Of a DNA stretch of 64,000 bases, positions 23,078 through 57,500 are shown one piece after another; position 1 is the first letter of the stretch; each line of letters begins with the position of its first letter. A program made the translations under genes and the position numbers. Origin of the DNA: Glycera tridactyla. Lineage: Eukaryota. The notes beneath the pieces were generated by a model that was given only the letters and a program-made list of their open reading frames with translations, was not told where the DNA came from and did no database searches. The stretch lies in NCBI GenBank assembly GCA_965644265.1, contig OZ286461.1, positions 106,888,001 through 106,952,000 of the forward strand. The letters are read 5' to 3'.

Positions 23078-24557
23078 CTTGGCATCCGAGCAGGATGGGG
23101 GGAATGGATGAGAGCATCCTTCCTGCATGTGATGATGGCATGTGACAGGTGACATTCTGCAGTTGTATACCATTATACCAGCGTGTCCAACACATACCGA
23201 TACGACAGTCAATCTCATTGCCGGACAGTAGGACGTACAGCACATCAATCAAGGATCCAGGTAGGTTGGGGATATTGCGCCCCGAATATATAGGTGGGGG
23301 AACTGCGCCATAATGACTCAAGCCCAAATCAATCGTTACCAGGAGGTTGTTTCTTAAATCCAATTTTTGTAGAAGATTACATGAAGCCGATATTGTGAAC
23401 GTTTCTAGTAGGTTGTTTGAAACACTGAGCTGTTTCAGATTACGAAACCTCCTCAACATCATTGGCTCAATATATGAGATTCGGTTATGACCAACATGAA
23501 GTGTTACTAGTGCACGGCCACGTATGTTGGGGAAGTCATCAATTTGATTTCTATTTAATGAAAGCACTATTAGATTGGGGAACGAGAAGACTTCAGTCGG
23601 TTCAGTCGAAATAATATTTTCGATTATTGAATTTATGCCATTGAGAGTGTAATTTGGGAATCTTTTGATTTGATTTGAATCGAAATATAGATACCTCGCA
23701 TACTTCAGGCGCTGTAAATCACCTAGACCAATGTACTGAAGTGTGTTGTTCTCAGCATTGAAAGAATACAGCGAAAATATCACTGGAAGGACAGGAATAT
23801 GCGTGAGGGAGTTGTGGGCTAATTCCATATACAGAACATTCACTGCATTTGCCATAGTGTGTCCTACGCCTACCGGTCCAAGATTACAATGACTAAGATC
23901 CATACTTTCAATCAAAGAGAATCTGAAATTCCCATTTGGTGCAAACTTCACATGCGAGCCTTGATAGATATCAAGTTCCCGTAGTTCATTCAAACCAAGG
24001 AGGCAGTATTCCGGAATTTCGTTTCCATCATCATATCCGTTGTAGATACCCTTGTAATATTCCAATAATGGCGTGTGGGGGCCAATGCATGGAAAAGTAT
24101 GTATTTTGCTAAAGGAAGTATCGAACTGTTTCAGTGACGAAAGACCCGCGAATGTTGACTGATGAAATATCATCCTCTGATCATTGAACATTATTAGCAG
24201 AGTTCTCAAGTTCCCGAGTCCCTCGAATGTACCACTCTGAAGTTCGGTCAGATTATTATGAGATAAATCCAGGTCGGTAAGATGTGTACAGTTGGAAAAC
24301 GCACCAGGTTTGATTAGGTTAATAACGTTCCAGCTGAGATCTAGATAGACTAGATTGCGATCACATCCAGGGAGTTCGATTATCTCAGTAAGCATATTAT
24401 TGTAGAGGTAAAGGCGAGTCGTCGCTGAGGGTATATCTTGTGGGAAGGTTGAGAGATCGAACCCATTCAGGTAGAGTTCAGATCCCGCCACTGTTTTGCA
24501 GGCCACCAGGAGCCAATATGTCAATATGCCAATAGCTCTGGCATTAGAACACTCCAT
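23078..24557 (-). CDS. LRR ectodomain exon 1: signal peptide, LRRs and LRRCT (493 codons plus 1 nt)
   Basis: Acceptor TTTCAG|ATG at 24557. Repeated LxxLxLxxNxL. LRRCT NEIDCRIGMCW..TCHMPSSHAG..GC. Donor AAG|GTAGGT at 23078/23077. Confidence 0.9.
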
Positions 24558-24992
24558 CTGAAAGCACCATAAATGGTCCAAGCACACTCAAATATCACAC
24601 ATAGCTTCCACTACCCACCGTAGTAGAATTCCAGTAGGATAACTGATTTGCTTTAACATCTGACATGTGGAATATTAGTTATCCTTTGAAAATTTCTCAT
24701 CAGAATTAAAAGAATCATTTATGTCTATGTTCACAGAAAGCTGGACGCATGTGTGAAGACGATAAGTCGGTATGTTTGATAGTTTCTTCACAAGTTGGCT
24801 TTGTATATGTCGGTAAGCTGTACCGACTAGAATGCCAGTAAATAAGCCAGTTAGTATTCAGTACAAAGAAATCGATCTACACTGTGAAATGAATCAACCC
24901 AGAGGGAAAGTAGCTTTTGGTAAGTGATGTGCCCCTTTCGGTATGACTAGATGCAATCTCATATCGCAGGATAAAACCGAAGATGTACTCAC

Positions 24993-25170
24993 ATTTGGTG
25001 CCTTTGTCAGCAGAAGGGTGACTCTCTAACTTGTGCGCGACACAAGTGAAAGGATGGAGAGCTATGACCAGTGTCAAGAACATCGGAATGAACAGCAGAG
25101 GATATGAAGTGACGGGAAGTGGAGTATTGTAGATGTCGCGATTCTCTGCACTAGAACAGTGCCACTTTTG
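24993..25170 (-). other. Candidate upstream (leader) exon of LRR copy 1
   Basis: Donor AAAT|GTGAGT at 24993/24992. Contains ATG-MFLTLVIALHPFTCVA. Its 5' boundary is uncertain. Confidence 0.35.
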
Positions 25171-26099
25171 AAAAAAATGAACCTGCTCTGCAGAGGGCAC
25201 CAATATTGCCGGAAAAAGGGATGATGATGATGATTGGCTATTGCATGGAAAAGTGGTCGCTTTTAGGAAGAACTATAATCAGATATGTGGATGATTGAAG
25301 TGATATAACAGTACTGTTGGTATATATGAAGATCTCAGTTGCTATTGGTGTAGTCAGATTCACTCCCAAATATTGCTAATATTGTAGATTCATGAAGGCT
25401 TTTTTAACTTTGAAAATTTTACCGGCGACACAAATTGGATTCAAATAGTCATTTCCAATTATGACCTCATGCCGGGGTATGCCGGGGTTTATTTACATCT
25501 AAGTACATATAGTAACTATACAACAATATCTGACCATTGTGATTCGTGTGAACACCATTGAAGAACAAAATACACTTTGCTTCAATTAACAAATCATCTT
25601 TGATGTTGTTATTGCATGGAAAGTTAATTAATGACCTTTATCAATCAATAAGTCAAAAAATGCCATTATCTGAGAGAACTTTCTGTGGAAATGGTCGTCA
25701 GATGCTTTGCCTGATTTTGTACTTTCGTGGGGTAAGTAAACCATCTTCATCAGCTACGAGAGCGACTGGAAAATGCACTGCCTGACTCTATATTCTCCCC
25801 CATTGAAAGCGCAGACCGTGACTGTAGATGATTGGTGTTCAGTCAAACATAGCAGGCACTTGAGGTAATATACATATTGGATGGGCAGGTGAATCAAAAC
25901 ACACTGACAGCATCCATCTGAATGTTGGAAAAGTTGCATAGTTGATGGCATGGTGATGAGATGGTTAATAATTGAGTCTCTCGAAGTCTCTGCATACAAG
26001 CCGGTCTCCATTGACATTCACCCTTGACCACTAACATCCTAGCTTCTGGAATCGCCAGACGTATGCCAGTACTACCTTTATTAAGATGGCTGATGCCAC

Positions 26100-26100
<1 letters not shown>

Positions 26101-54557: not shown

Positions 54558-55399
54558 TTGCTGGACAGTCTTCCATGCATCCACTCATTCATCCAACAAT
54601 CGATCTACCTGTTCAACAATATATGCATGTATGTATTCCATTTATACATAGATGTATGTGTATCCTTGTATTGAATTATCCCGTAATAATCTACCCATGG
54701 ATAGGAATTAATTCCAGAGGTGTGTGGTTTGGGGGCATATCCACTGGGTACTACTTCTTGAGATAGCATATTCATCGGATTCCTCCACCTGACGTTTCAT
54801 GATGCGGAGAGTTTTTATCTCTAGCTCTCATTTGTTTGGTCTTTCCAGCCCCACGAACAGCTCAATTATTTATTGAATTTATTATCGAGAGATGACATTT
54901 TGGGATTTTGGTGCAGGAAGTGTATAAAAGTTGTGTATCGCGGCTTGCTATAAGATTTGGGCACTATCCAGAATTACTTCACGCCGGAAGACCATCAGGG
55001 ATAGGATGACCGGGAGGAAATACTGTGTAGCTGTAGCATATGTGTCAAATCAAAGGCGTCAGTCAAGCATTGTCTCAATCATTTTGAATAACGATCTGGA
55101 TGAACTCAATATGTAGTCCCCTATACCGAGGGGGGGCCCTTTCTCCTCAAAGATATCTTTTCACTCTTGTTAGATTGTCAGCATGTATGCGTGACTTACA
55201 GTAATGTGTGAAATCCACGAACATACCCCATGGTTTTGTTTTCAGTGATTGGTTTGGTGCTTCTATGATAAATATCCCCTGAGTACCAACATATGATTAG
55301 ACAAAATGCTGCTGTGTCTCCAGGATCTGCTTGGATTCATGTTTATATTTCGACCTGAAGAGACATTCAGTCATCTGGGGTTATTGGATTGGACTTCAC

Positions 55400-57060
55400 T
55401 TTCAGACAGAACTGAATACCTTCTGTATGAATTGATTGACTGAGGCTTCACTGGCTCCCGAATGAAAGGCTTTCATCAGGTGATTTTCAAACGGCTCGAA
55501 AGCAGAAATATAAAGCATGGATTTCAACTGCGATGGGCAATTTGAGCTCAGAGGGGCATGTAGAGCCATAAGTCATGCACACTCCTGACTTTGATCAAAC
55601 GAGATATTGGTAAGTCATGATCAATATCTCCCAATCAGCTCTCTGTCCAAGTGTGAGGCACCTTTAGCATGTTCATTGATCAAAGACATTCGACTGAACA
55701 TTGGGTTCTACTTTCAGTTGCCTGTCAAACTCAGGCCCAGAAGCTTTGTGTCCCACCGAAAGAAAGCTCAGATTCTTCACGGTGACCTGCTAATCCATAG
55801 AACTGCATGTGAGCCACTTCGATTTCTAAACATCTGGAGTCAAGACTGACTTCATGCTCCGCCGTATACTGCCCATTCCCTTGTTGGAGGCTTCTGGGGA
55901 GGTAGACACATGTCGGACATGGAAGGTCTGGTCCCTCGGGAATGCTGGCATCCTCTCCCTCAGCTTCATTTTGAGGAGATTGAAGAGGCCAATGGAGTCA
56001 TATGTGGATGGTTGGTTGGTTGACATATAAGATGGTTTGTTGGGTTGGACGTTGTGTTTCATCACCACACCAGTTCTATGTGTGCTATACTGTGTGAGCC
56101 CAGAGGGTCATGGCTCGGACTCCTCCTATCAAGCAATAACAACAAATGGAAGATAGAATAATACGGTAGTCTCATGTGATCAGCTTATGTACATGCGAGC
56201 TCGATGTTTCCTCGCCTTTTGGTGTAGAATGACTGTGGACATCAAAGGCACAGCCATAAAACTACGAGCCAAATTGCTCATAATTCACTATTCAGGCAAA
56301 CAAAAATGATGCAATCGAATTCCAGTTCAATTTTTTTTTTTGGGGGGGGGGGAATTCTTGCAAACAACTGAACAATATAAGGTTTGCATTCGATGAATCA
56401 GGTTTGGGTGAAGCACCTGTTTCATTGGGAGGTTCTCCAAAATGTCCTAGGTTCGTGGTGAAATCATTTGAGTTCACATTCCTCCCATATAACCATATTC
56501 CTACCCATATAATATTAGTAGTGGCTCCGTTGGTGTAGCCATGGATGAGTCGAAACCCCATTTCTGGAGTGCAATTATCCAGTGAGGGATTTTCCGATGA
56601 TCAGCAGGTATTTCCGGAAATGTTTAAGGTAGAACCGTTTGAATTGAGCATATGAAGGTGAGCTTATGGTCAACCTGTCCAGTCCCATATAGGTCTAATG
56701 AAATTTCATGCCAACAAGGACATGATTTCAGGATCAGGTCAGAGATCTCGTTTGCCAGATCAGCCTTGGGCACCTTTTTGTCATGGGATCAACTCATCAG
56801 TGATTCACGGTAATTAGGCAATGCAGTATGAGTTGCATTGTAGAAGATGAGAGAGAATACGAGACGATATGGAATAGTGATGAGAATTGGTGTGGTTATG
56901 TGTGCAGATGACAGGTACAATTCAGGGAAAATCTAGAATATATATTCGCAGTGAGGATGGAGGCTGGTTGGTTGATTTGATTAACATCCTGTGAACACCA
57001 TCATGGCTATACTGAAACACCTATCTATTGGTGACAATATTTGAGACTCCTTCTGGGTTC
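55400..57060 (-). pseudogene. Decayed LRR relic inside the leader intron of copy 3
   Basis: YMGLDRL (copy 3 has LLGLDRL), LYGRNVNSN, and GLFNLLKMKLRERMPAFP (cf. FPYLKRLTLIRNQITHFP), in broken frames. Confidence 0.45.
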
Positions 57061-57207
57061 CCAACAGAAGCAAACAATTGTGATATTCACATTGAGACAA
57101 AGTGTGATTTCCGACTATTTAAGTATGTATATTGCCACTTACAATACACATTATTCTAAACAAGTAATACAGAGGATTAGATATCGAGATTGAAAACAGA
57201 TACTGAC

Positions 57208-57500
57208 CGGTGATTTGTGGATGAGGTACTTGTTCAATTTCTTCTGAGGGTCATTCTTCAGAGTTGCATGTTCAAAGTGTGAAGTACATGGTAAACCCGT
57301 GAAAATATGAGGTGCTCACTCTCCGGATTACAATATGATACTGGTTTTGATTTTTGGTCATAAAAGACAGCAGCCAAAAAAATGAAAACTGAACATCCGA
57401 CCATGTTGCATCAATGAAATCGACCATGAATAATGAAAGTGACTATTCAACTGCTAAGTGAAGACCATGAAGATAGCACTTTTTATTCATGAGCACAATT
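57208..57500 (-). other. Non-coding leader exon and promoter region of LRR copy 3
   Basis: Donor CCG|GTCAGT at 57208/57207. Shares GTGAAGACCAYGAAGATAGCACTT with the copy 2 leader region. Confidence 0.6.

Follow-up and report, generated by a model that had tools for sequence, protein, structure and literature searches.

The 64,000-nucleotide stretch of the Glycera tridactyla genome analyzed here (hereafter, the window) holds three intact minus-strand exons, each encoding a predicted extracellular leucine-rich repeat (LRR) ectodomain. The explanation that fits best, in which our confidence is about even, is that three paralogous genes of a fast-evolving, lineage-restricted family of extracellular LRR proteins lie here in an ordinary tandem cluster, each closing with a short last exon that is unrecognizable from the sequence alone. 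Under this explanation, each gene would open with a private non-coding leader exon, followed by one large exon in which signal peptide, about 18 LRRs, and LRRCT together make up the entire recognition ectodomain. Beyond a conserved phase-1 intron, a short last exon would contribute a few codons or a small anchor. Each copy would have its own small 3' exon, and the products would be secreted or membrane-anchored binding proteins, with immune or cell-surface recognition as the most plausible role.

The three ectodomain exons and selection on copies 2 and 3

The LRR exons of copies 1, 2, and 3 lie on the minus strand at 23078..24557, 42233..43740, and 52934..54447, with their ATG codons at 24557, 43712, and 54419, respectively. 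In copies 2 and 3, 28 nt of 5' UTR separate the acceptor from the ATG. The sequence-only reading had described three intact open reading frames on this strand, and the coding lengths from ATG to donor, 1480, 1480, and 1486 nt for copies 1, 2, and 3, agree with that description; the copy 1 frame, like the other two, ends one nucleotide into a split codon, that is, in phase 1. None of the three exons contains a single N letter. The assembly gaps at 35152-35425, 38453-38638, 47131-47328, and 47391-47547 all fall in the spacers, and no claimed frame spans them.

Each exon encodes a predicted signal peptide, judged from the hydrophobic N-termini, followed by about 18 LRRs and an LRRCT. Pfam LRR families were matched in the exons (for copy 1, LRR_8 at 9.6e-27), and the predicted structure consists of an N-terminal helix and then a regular beta-strand solenoid, with a mean pLDDT of 83. 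The four LRRCT cysteines align across the family, and the ectodomain, about 470 aa long, is without a cysteine-capped LRRNT. Overall, this order of N-terminal signal peptide, LRR array, and cysteine-capped LRRCT, as read from the sequence, fits a secreted or anchored extracellular LRR architecture. Copy 1 was rightly singled out in the sequence-only reading as far more diverged: its identity to copies 2 and 3 is 33-34%, compared with 67% between the latter two.

Selection is acting to keep both copy 2 and copy 3 open. Their raw nucleotide divergence is about 21%, with zero stops, in-frame indels only, and only two gapped codons between them; dN/dS is about 0.45-0.6, and in a neutral simulation the chance of the frame staying stop-free was about 0.003 per lineage. 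These figures bear on the possibility that a partial duplication left one or more of the copies, copy 3 being the likeliest, as orphaned 5' gene fragments, which would be either unproductive or expressed as a truncated secreted LRR protein through cryptic or next-copy acceptors. The duplication breakpoint does lie inside an intron, and chained splicing would yield an LRR ectodomain with a tail of 15 or 4 residues. Against this, such divergence with no stop and in-frame indels only is very unlikely without selection, dN/dS is below 1, and leader block, acceptor, and donor are retained in both copies 2 and 3; we therefore regard orphaned fragments as improbable.

Splice sites and candidate leader exons

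The minus-strand donors that close the three exons lie at 23072..23077 in copy 1 (GTAGGT, in the context CAAG/GTAGGT at 23078), 42227..42232 in copy 2 (GTAAGT, AAAG/GTAAGT at 42233), and 52928..52933 in copy 3 (GTAAGT, TCAA/GTAAGT at 52934). The common phase-1 donor proposed in the sequence-only reading holds, as all three sit one or two codons past the last LRRCT cysteine, and the position and phase of the copy 1 donor are homologous in all family members. All six sequences in which both sites could be inspected have an acceptor just 5' of the ATG and a phase-1 GTA donor that follows the last cysteine by one or two codons, and GTA(A/G)(G/T) is kept across these six although the proteins are only 31-38% identical. 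Since the same donor and phase recur in three foreign homologous contigs, the intron after the LRRCT is, judged by this conservation, old and real, and the exons are evidently spliced to something downstream, with at least one 3' exon out of view.

At the other end of the exons, the minus-strand acceptor of copy 1 (24558..24559, TTTCAG) abuts the ATG directly, and those of copies 2 (43741..43742) and 3 (54448..54449) both read ATTTTCAG. A 15-mer around the acceptor, TTTTCAGGTGCTGGC, is identical in copies 2 and 3. The distance from acceptor to ATG is thus 0 nt in copy 1 and 28 nt in copies 2 and 3, and the three foreign homologues likewise have a consensus acceptor. An acceptor directly 5' of each ATG suggests that the LRR exons are internal, behind private leaders, rather than first exons. 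Pyrimidine tracts are weak at the true acceptors of the family, scoring 0.60-0.67 on our own measure, and a tiny private last exon would for this reason not be recognizable ab initio.

Candidate leaders were sought in the sequence conserved upstream of copies 2 and 3. A block 5' of copy 2 (45209..45761, minus strand), a candidate promoter and leader exon, includes a 38-nt element at 45593-45630 and a candidate donor, CCG/GTGAGT, at 45327/45326. The homologous block 5' of copy 3 (57088..57621, minus strand) carries the element at 57456-57493 and a candidate leader donor, CCG/GTCAGT, at 57208/57207. The two copies of the element agree at 36 of 36 specified positions. That copies 2 and 3 each have their own leader exon, as had been suggested, is plausible given the 3' splice site kept 28 nt before each ATG and the candidate donors in the conserved upstream block, and these blocks may well contain both the leader exon and the promoter. 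The region upstream of copy 2 also holds an unstranded inverted repeat (47046..47633), whose arms, 47046-47130 and 47548-47633, flank the gaps at 47131-47328 and 47391-47547; the arm is 85 nt long, the 243 nt given by the program being inflated by the pairing of N with N. Upstream of copy 3, the gap at 62549-62768 has homologous flanks that run collinearly with those of the 47131-47547 gaps. As the latter flanks also form the inverted repeat, the scaffold order around 47131-47547 looks right. Matches found by tblastx that would have tied 38.3-40.2 kb collinearly to the copy 2 leader region were dropped, as sensitive blastn failed to reproduce them.

The search for downstream exons

Past the donors, the intron homology of copy 2 (41760..42226, minus strand) matches 52290-52927 downstream of copy 3 and marks the edge of the duplication unit. 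The homology stops no more than about 570 bp beyond the donor, so no sizeable homologous private 3' exon appears to have been co-duplicated, and within this homologous stretch the two copies share no conserved acceptor whose pyrimidine tract is convincing. Any private last exon that was inherited would consequently be very small, or copy 3 would have newly recruited one. A mini-intron to a conserved CACAG 105 nt past the donor of copies 2 and 3 was rejected, the resulting 10-residue tails being conserved no better than intron.

The same stretch allowed us to weigh whether the donors are used at all. The open frames run on beyond them, and with unused donors the intron would add tails of 46, 46, and 25 codons to the proteins; the tails of copies 2 and 3 are equal in length and stop at the same aligned codon, and that of copy 3 has a hydrophobic, TM-like stretch, WCLFFLIIVMSSLLFTWGLI. 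However, these tails are 67% identical, with substitutions spread 18/15/14 over the codon positions of the read-through frame. This even, neutral behavior indicates that the post-donor stretch is non-coding and that the donors are used. The hydrophobic stretch, moreover, is missing from copies 2 and 1 and is attributable to the T-rich start of the intron. Considering also the retention of the donor motif in six such dissimilar sequences, we judge read-through very unlikely.

We searched the spacers with 120 proteins of the LRR family (TLR, LGR, vasorin, LRR-Ig, and others) as tblastn queries, with a TIR HMM, and with Pfam on ORFs of at least 90 aa. The statement in the sequence-only reading that the spacers contain no coding exon stands insofar as nothing but reverse transcriptase was found by searches that few-codon exons escape, outside the 815 N letters of the two spacers. 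The 64 kb yielded no coding sequence for TIR, Ig, EGF, or 7TM domains: the best E was 0.32 for TIR-bearing TLRs in tblastn and the TIR HMM, run over all six frames, and LGR5 homologues, used in tblastn to look for a 7TM of LGR type, matched the LRR exons only. No private 3' exon was found in the window for any of the three copies, and neither tblastx among the three downstream spacers nor the comparison of the DNA downstream of two foreign homologues (L002 and L003) with the window revealed a conserved 3' exon. Candidates combining a phase-1 acceptor, an ORF, and a hydrophobic segment (48846, 38128/38155, and 25259) were discarded, since they are as frequent in wrong phases or on the wrong strand (6 vs 5-12 per 64 kb). 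The spacers had further been described as filled with mobile elements and LRR relics. Reverse-transcriptase fragments and short repeats are present, but much of the sequence is satellite and microsatellite arrays; the relics had to be given up, as tblastn with the three exons found zero at E up to 10, and spacer ORFs of the LTHSLTH type are explained as microsatellite translations.

In the clustered protocadherin (Pcdh) and UGT1A loci, promoter-bearing variable 5' exons are spliced to constant 3' exons. By analogy, copies 3, 2, and possibly 1 could be alternative promoter-bearing ectodomain exons joined to one or more shared downstream anchor or signaling exons, sited in the spacer that separates copies 1 and 2, left of copy 1, or beyond the window, an arrangement that we think unlikely. 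The locus does share with protocadherin and UGT1A a tandem series of large exons, each encoding a whole recognition domain with its own putative upstream regulatory block, donors of the same phase (phase 1 in three of three), and a youngest pair derived from a duplication that ended inside the downstream intron. Copy 3 inherited no detectable 3' exon, as the unit ends in the intron, yet selection holds its frame open; neither spacer yielded a TM, TIR, Ig, or 7TM exon; and alternative 5'-exon clusters are thought to arise by such partial duplication. The identical phase, however, is already accounted for by common descent, as single-copy foreign contigs have phase 1 too. Variable exons should be first exons, with their own promoter and no acceptor, and none of the three has this form: each LRR exon is bounded by an acceptor and a donor of its own, lies behind a putative private leader, and would be internal in a read-through transcript, in which an upstream donor meets the acceptor of the next LRR exon first. 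With such chained splicing, the frame would run into a stop 15 codons on when copy 3 is joined to copy 2, and 4 codons on when copy 2 is joined to copy 1. Also unlike protocadherin and UGT1A, the exons have no TM segment, and there are no more than three copies, of which two simply form a duplicate pair. The search for a constant exon (TM, TIR, Ig, or 7TM) came up empty both in the spacers and in positions 1-23077, the 23 kb left of copy 1, where a LINE remnant and a 2988-bp tandem repeat were found. A full-text literature search returned no description of an LRR receptor diversified by a cluster of variable and constant exons.

Relatives, structural likenesses, and meaning

An exhaustive HMMER search recovered only four relatives, all at the ORF level and on short contigs from other (meta)genomes, and a metagenome scan returned one already known relative contig again. 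The collections searched held no annotated relative of this LRR family: word-indexed searches gave generic LRR proteins, and a region-restricted search gave nothing. Matches to giant proteins of 2000-8000 aa were similarly set aside as generic LRR proteins. The family-wide motifs are FPCLGPY, C.G.GDLQR, and the LRRCT pattern CD..LCW...C. The foreign contig L003 has, 470 bp past its donor, a very strong acceptor that leads to two codons and then a stop, which makes a tiny last exon realistic for the family. Two longer candidates for exon 3 were rejected and kept as leads, neither having a counterpart in the window: a stalk-TM-tail candidate in L002 (3520-3716) is T-rich, repeat-like sequence with a non-significant Pfam match, and a long ORF past the second AG in L003 is not recognized as a protein.

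Among known proteins, TLR3, TLR13, TLR7/8/9, and the invertebrate TIR-domain receptor 8suf were among the best PDB profile matches; in TLR8/7/9 the matches span the C-terminal LRR-LRRCT region, the part of a TLR that comes just before the membrane. Unlike Toll-like receptors, the present family shows no TIR in the 64 kb, has an ectodomain of only about 470 aa with no cysteine-capped LRRNT, and shares just 15-25% identity with them. The best superposition of the predicted horseshoe was on the LGR4/5/6 ectodomain (TM 0.55-0.61), a likeness of the generic LRR fold. LGR ectodomains are encoded across many small exons, whereas one large exon encodes the ectodomain here and no 7TM exon was detected in the window. 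LRRC32/GARP, vasorin, and LRRC15, which have a short anchor, and the secreted IGFALS and podocan were recurrent matches; like the proteins predicted here, they consist of a signal peptide, one long LRR array, an LRRCT, and little else, although there is no orthology and identity is at most 27%. A plan like that of LRRC32/GARP or IGFALS is the architecture expected if the locus is an ordinary tandem cluster. The VLR loci of lamprey and hagfish are likewise genomic clusters of LRR-based recognition modules. VLR cassettes, however, are partial LRR pieces with no signal peptide or splice sites, assembled by gene conversion, whereas the modules here are complete ectodomain exons with consensus splice sites.

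If the tandem-cluster explanation is true, the locus would enlarge the already extensive innate-receptor repertoire of one lophotrochozoan by a rapidly evolving LRR family that has so far gone unannotated, a family with a conserved three-part gene plan whose relatives are raw ORFs on a few (meta)genome contigs. This would help annotation and would be unsurprising. A locus with a shared tail would come about through precisely such a partial duplication as lies behind copies 2 and 3. Were the exons indeed joined to such a tail, this would be the first LRR receptor locus to use alternative 5' ectodomain exons as a diversifier, caught as it arises through a duplication ending inside an intron.

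The LRR exons and the intron that follows them

The ORF scan of the window returned three long minus-strand reading frames (23004-24587, 42093-43712 and 52794-54584), and Pfam placed all of them in LRR families (LRR_8, E = 1e-24 to 1e-26). If the coding sequence is taken to begin at the first ATG followed by a hydrophobic stretch resembling a signal peptide, and to end at the proposed donor, copies 1, 2 and 3 comprise 1480, 1480 and 1486 coding nucleotides, and their exons contain no N letters. They end at CAAG/GTAGGT (copy 1, 23078), AAAG/GTAAGT (copy 2, 42233) and TCAA/GTAAGT (copy 3, 52934), all in phase 1 and one to two codons past the final LRRCT cysteine. 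At the protein level, copies 2 and 3 are 67% identical, and copy 1 is 33-34% identical to either. The sequence-only reading, which had described three such ORFs with these lengths and phase-1 donors, was largely right about the anatomy of the locus, except for the LRR relics that it placed in the spacers: tblastn with the three exons found none there, at E-values up to 10.

The AlphaFold model formed a regular LRR horseshoe (pLDDT 83), and this predicted model matched the LGR4/5 ectodomains best (TM 0.55-0.61). The top PDB profile matches were a TIR-domain receptor, IGFALS, TLR13, TLR3, LGR5, LRRC15 and GARP, together with the C-terminal LRR-LRRCT of TLR7/8/9. These structural and profile matches put the family in the broad group of extracellular LRR binding proteins, with no single one assigned. 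Copies 2 and 3 differ by a dN of about 0.20 and a dS of about 0.35-0.45, with only two gapped codons; when neutral substitution was simulated at 12% divergence per lineage, only about 0.3% of outcomes were stop-free. Judged by their sequences, both members of this young pair should be functional, and we regard it as rather improbable that the copies are orphaned or truncated.

An exhaustive HMMER search recovered only four true relatives, 31-38% identical in the alignment, each a single full-length match and a bare ORF call on a short (meta)genome contig. Three of them extend to the C-terminus, and there the ORF enters a donor-like site (G/GTAAT, G/GTAAG and G/GTAAG) in phase 1, two codons after the final cysteine. 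The presence of GTA(A/G)(G/T) at one position in six such diverged sequences rules out chance retention. When read through the donor, the tails of copies 2 and 3 share 67% identity, and their substitutions fall about equally on the three codon positions (18/15/14); they behave like neutral intron, not coding sequence. That the donors go unused and transcripts read through them is very unlikely in our assessment. Together, the conserved donors and neutral-like tails indicate that the LRR exons are spliced and that at least one 3′ exon exists; we take the intron 3′ of the LRRCT to be both real and old.

Acceptors and the gene plan of the family

A consensus 3′ splice site lies shortly before the ATG in all three LRR exons. 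On the minus strand, copy 1 reads TTTCAG/ATG, with the acceptor abutting the ATG, and copies 2 and 3 carry ATTTTCAG, followed by 28 nt to the ATG; the foreign contigs (3/3) are arranged alike, with the site 5-9 nt ahead of the ATG. Both copy 2 and copy 3 are preceded by a conserved block; it contains a 38-nt element in which the two copies agree at 36 of 36 specified positions, and leader-donor candidates on the minus strand at CCG/GTGAGT (copy 2, 45327/45326) and CCG/GTCAGT (copy 3, 57208/57207). The acceptors and upstream blocks point to a family plan of leader exon, LRR exon, phase-1 intron and further 3′ exon(s). On this plan, the LRR exons are internal exons.

The sequence-only reading had instead proposed LRR ectodomain exons spliced to one shared tail, as in protocadherins and UGT1A. 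Variable exons of protocadherins and UGT1A are skipped by upstream donors because they have no acceptors, whereas each LRR exon here carries one. A transcript reading through from copy 3 would first encounter the acceptor of copy 2, and the resulting 1 + 28 nt would break the frame; as derived from the sequences, chained splicing would run into a stop after 15 codons where the copy 3 donor joins the copy 2 acceptor at 43741/43740, and after 4 codons where the copy 2 donor joins the copy 1 acceptor at 24558/24557. Two points here weigh against a shared tail: the LRR exons are not first exons, and their identical donor phase is inherited.

The duplication edge and the spacers

Similarity between copies 2 and 3 spans the exon and about 4 kb upstream at copy 2 or about 9 kb at copy 3, the latter span being swollen by insertions. 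A reverse-transcriptase ORF (59535-60545, minus strand; RVT_1 at 1.5e-9 for 59535-60179), split by a gap at 60182-60492, is inserted in the copy 3 upstream region. Rfam, run at its gathering threshold, returned no family in any part of the window. Past the donor, similarity extends for 450-570 bp only, and the DNA farther downstream is unrelated between the two copies, even with 7-nt words. This comparison would detect a homologous private last exon of at least 50 codons, but one of a few codons would escape it; no acceptor with a convincing tract kept in both copies was seen in the common 570 bp. That no 3′ exon was found is genuinely puzzling, all the more so given this breakpoint, which also speaks for copies joined to common 3′ exon(s).

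A tblastn search of the window with 120 proteins of the LRR family as queries matched nothing but the three LRR exons; among the queries were TLRs with TIR, LGR5 with 7TM, vasorin with EGF/FN3, LRR-Ig and LRR-CUB proteins. A TIR HMM applied to six-frame, stop-free fragments of at least 25 codons gave no match (best E = 0.32), and Pfam returned only weak reverse-transcriptase matches for spacer ORFs of at least 90 aa. The earlier claim that the spacers hold no coding exon agrees with these searches, within bounds set by exons of a few codons and a total of 815 unread letters in the spacers. No constant exon was detected in the window either, and such methods would miss a tiny last exon, which this family could plausibly have; both points count against a shared tail, which we consider unlikely.

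An ab initio scan for a phase-1 acceptor, an ORF and a hydrophobic segment yielded candidates at 48846, 38128 and 25259, which we rejected, as equally many matches arose in wrong phases and on the wrong strand. The family's six known acceptors score 0.60-0.67 on our own pyrimidine measure, so low that sequence alone has little power for exon finding here.

All four spacer gaps, including 35152-35425, 38453-38638 and the double gap 47131-47547, lie outside the claimed reading frames. The sequences on either side of the double gap, which together make up an 85-nt inverted repeat, are collinear with the homologous flanks of a gap at 62549-62768 upstream of copy 3. This supports the scaffold order at the double gap, and the gap itself probably reflects a foldback difficult to assemble.

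Much of the copy 2-copy 1 spacer consists of a 21/41-nt satellite, a GTGA/CCAA microsatellite and a 2.1-kb direct duplication, and its 'LTHSLTH' and 'GWLVGW' ORFs are translations of these. The duplicates (29060-31220 and 32064-34217, 95% identical) are embedded in the satellite and GTGA/CCAA arrays (27900-29900 and 31550-32880), and each holds an intact minus-strand ORF of 194 aa (30437-31021, 33434-34018), for which Pfam gave no match. A short interspersed repeat (26580-26694, 51507-51570 and 60736-60848; 71-74% identical, both orientations), which occurs in each spacer and again upstream of copy 3, probably represents a small non-autonomous element. A decayed LINE-like element on the strand of the LRR exons (15983-20129, minus) takes up much of the 7 kb immediately downstream of copy 1; it contains ORF fragments of 162, 89, 104, 106 and 285 aa, and RVT_1 matched weakly at 18416-18730. 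Farther left, positions 1-8893 hold a 2988-bp unit three times, head-to-tail, at 99.86% identity, each with a plus-strand 168-aa ORF (e.g. 2840-3346, 5827-6333) with no Pfam match; the array continues past the left window edge and looks like a very young tandem amplification. At the right edge, a 217-aa plus-strand ORF (63322-63975) had no significant match (Guanylin, E = 0.006, below the Pfam cut-off).

Candidates for a small third exon

Two of the foreign contigs bearing homologues of the family, L002 and L003, contain candidates for exon 3. In L003, a very strong acceptor 470 bp past the donor adds two codons and then a stop, and a second AG, 23 nt beyond the first, opens a 43-codon frame that is not recognised as protein. 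L002 has, about 750 bp past its first donor and within T-rich repeat-like DNA, a candidate exon of compatible phase, which encodes a short stalk, then a hydrophobic segment of 17 residues and a 28-residue tail with a basic start; no counterpart was found in the window. At 2720-2920 of L002, the final ~58 nt of the LRR exon plus its donor recur in tandem; three of the copies have GTAAGT and a fourth, degenerate copy has GTGAG, which gives several alternative donors in a row.

The candidates in L002 and L003 suggest that exon 3 of the LRR family may be small. The probability left over by all the readings named here falls to something else altogether. At about even chances, the three copies would be separate genes, each with a small, as yet unseen 3′ exon of its own.
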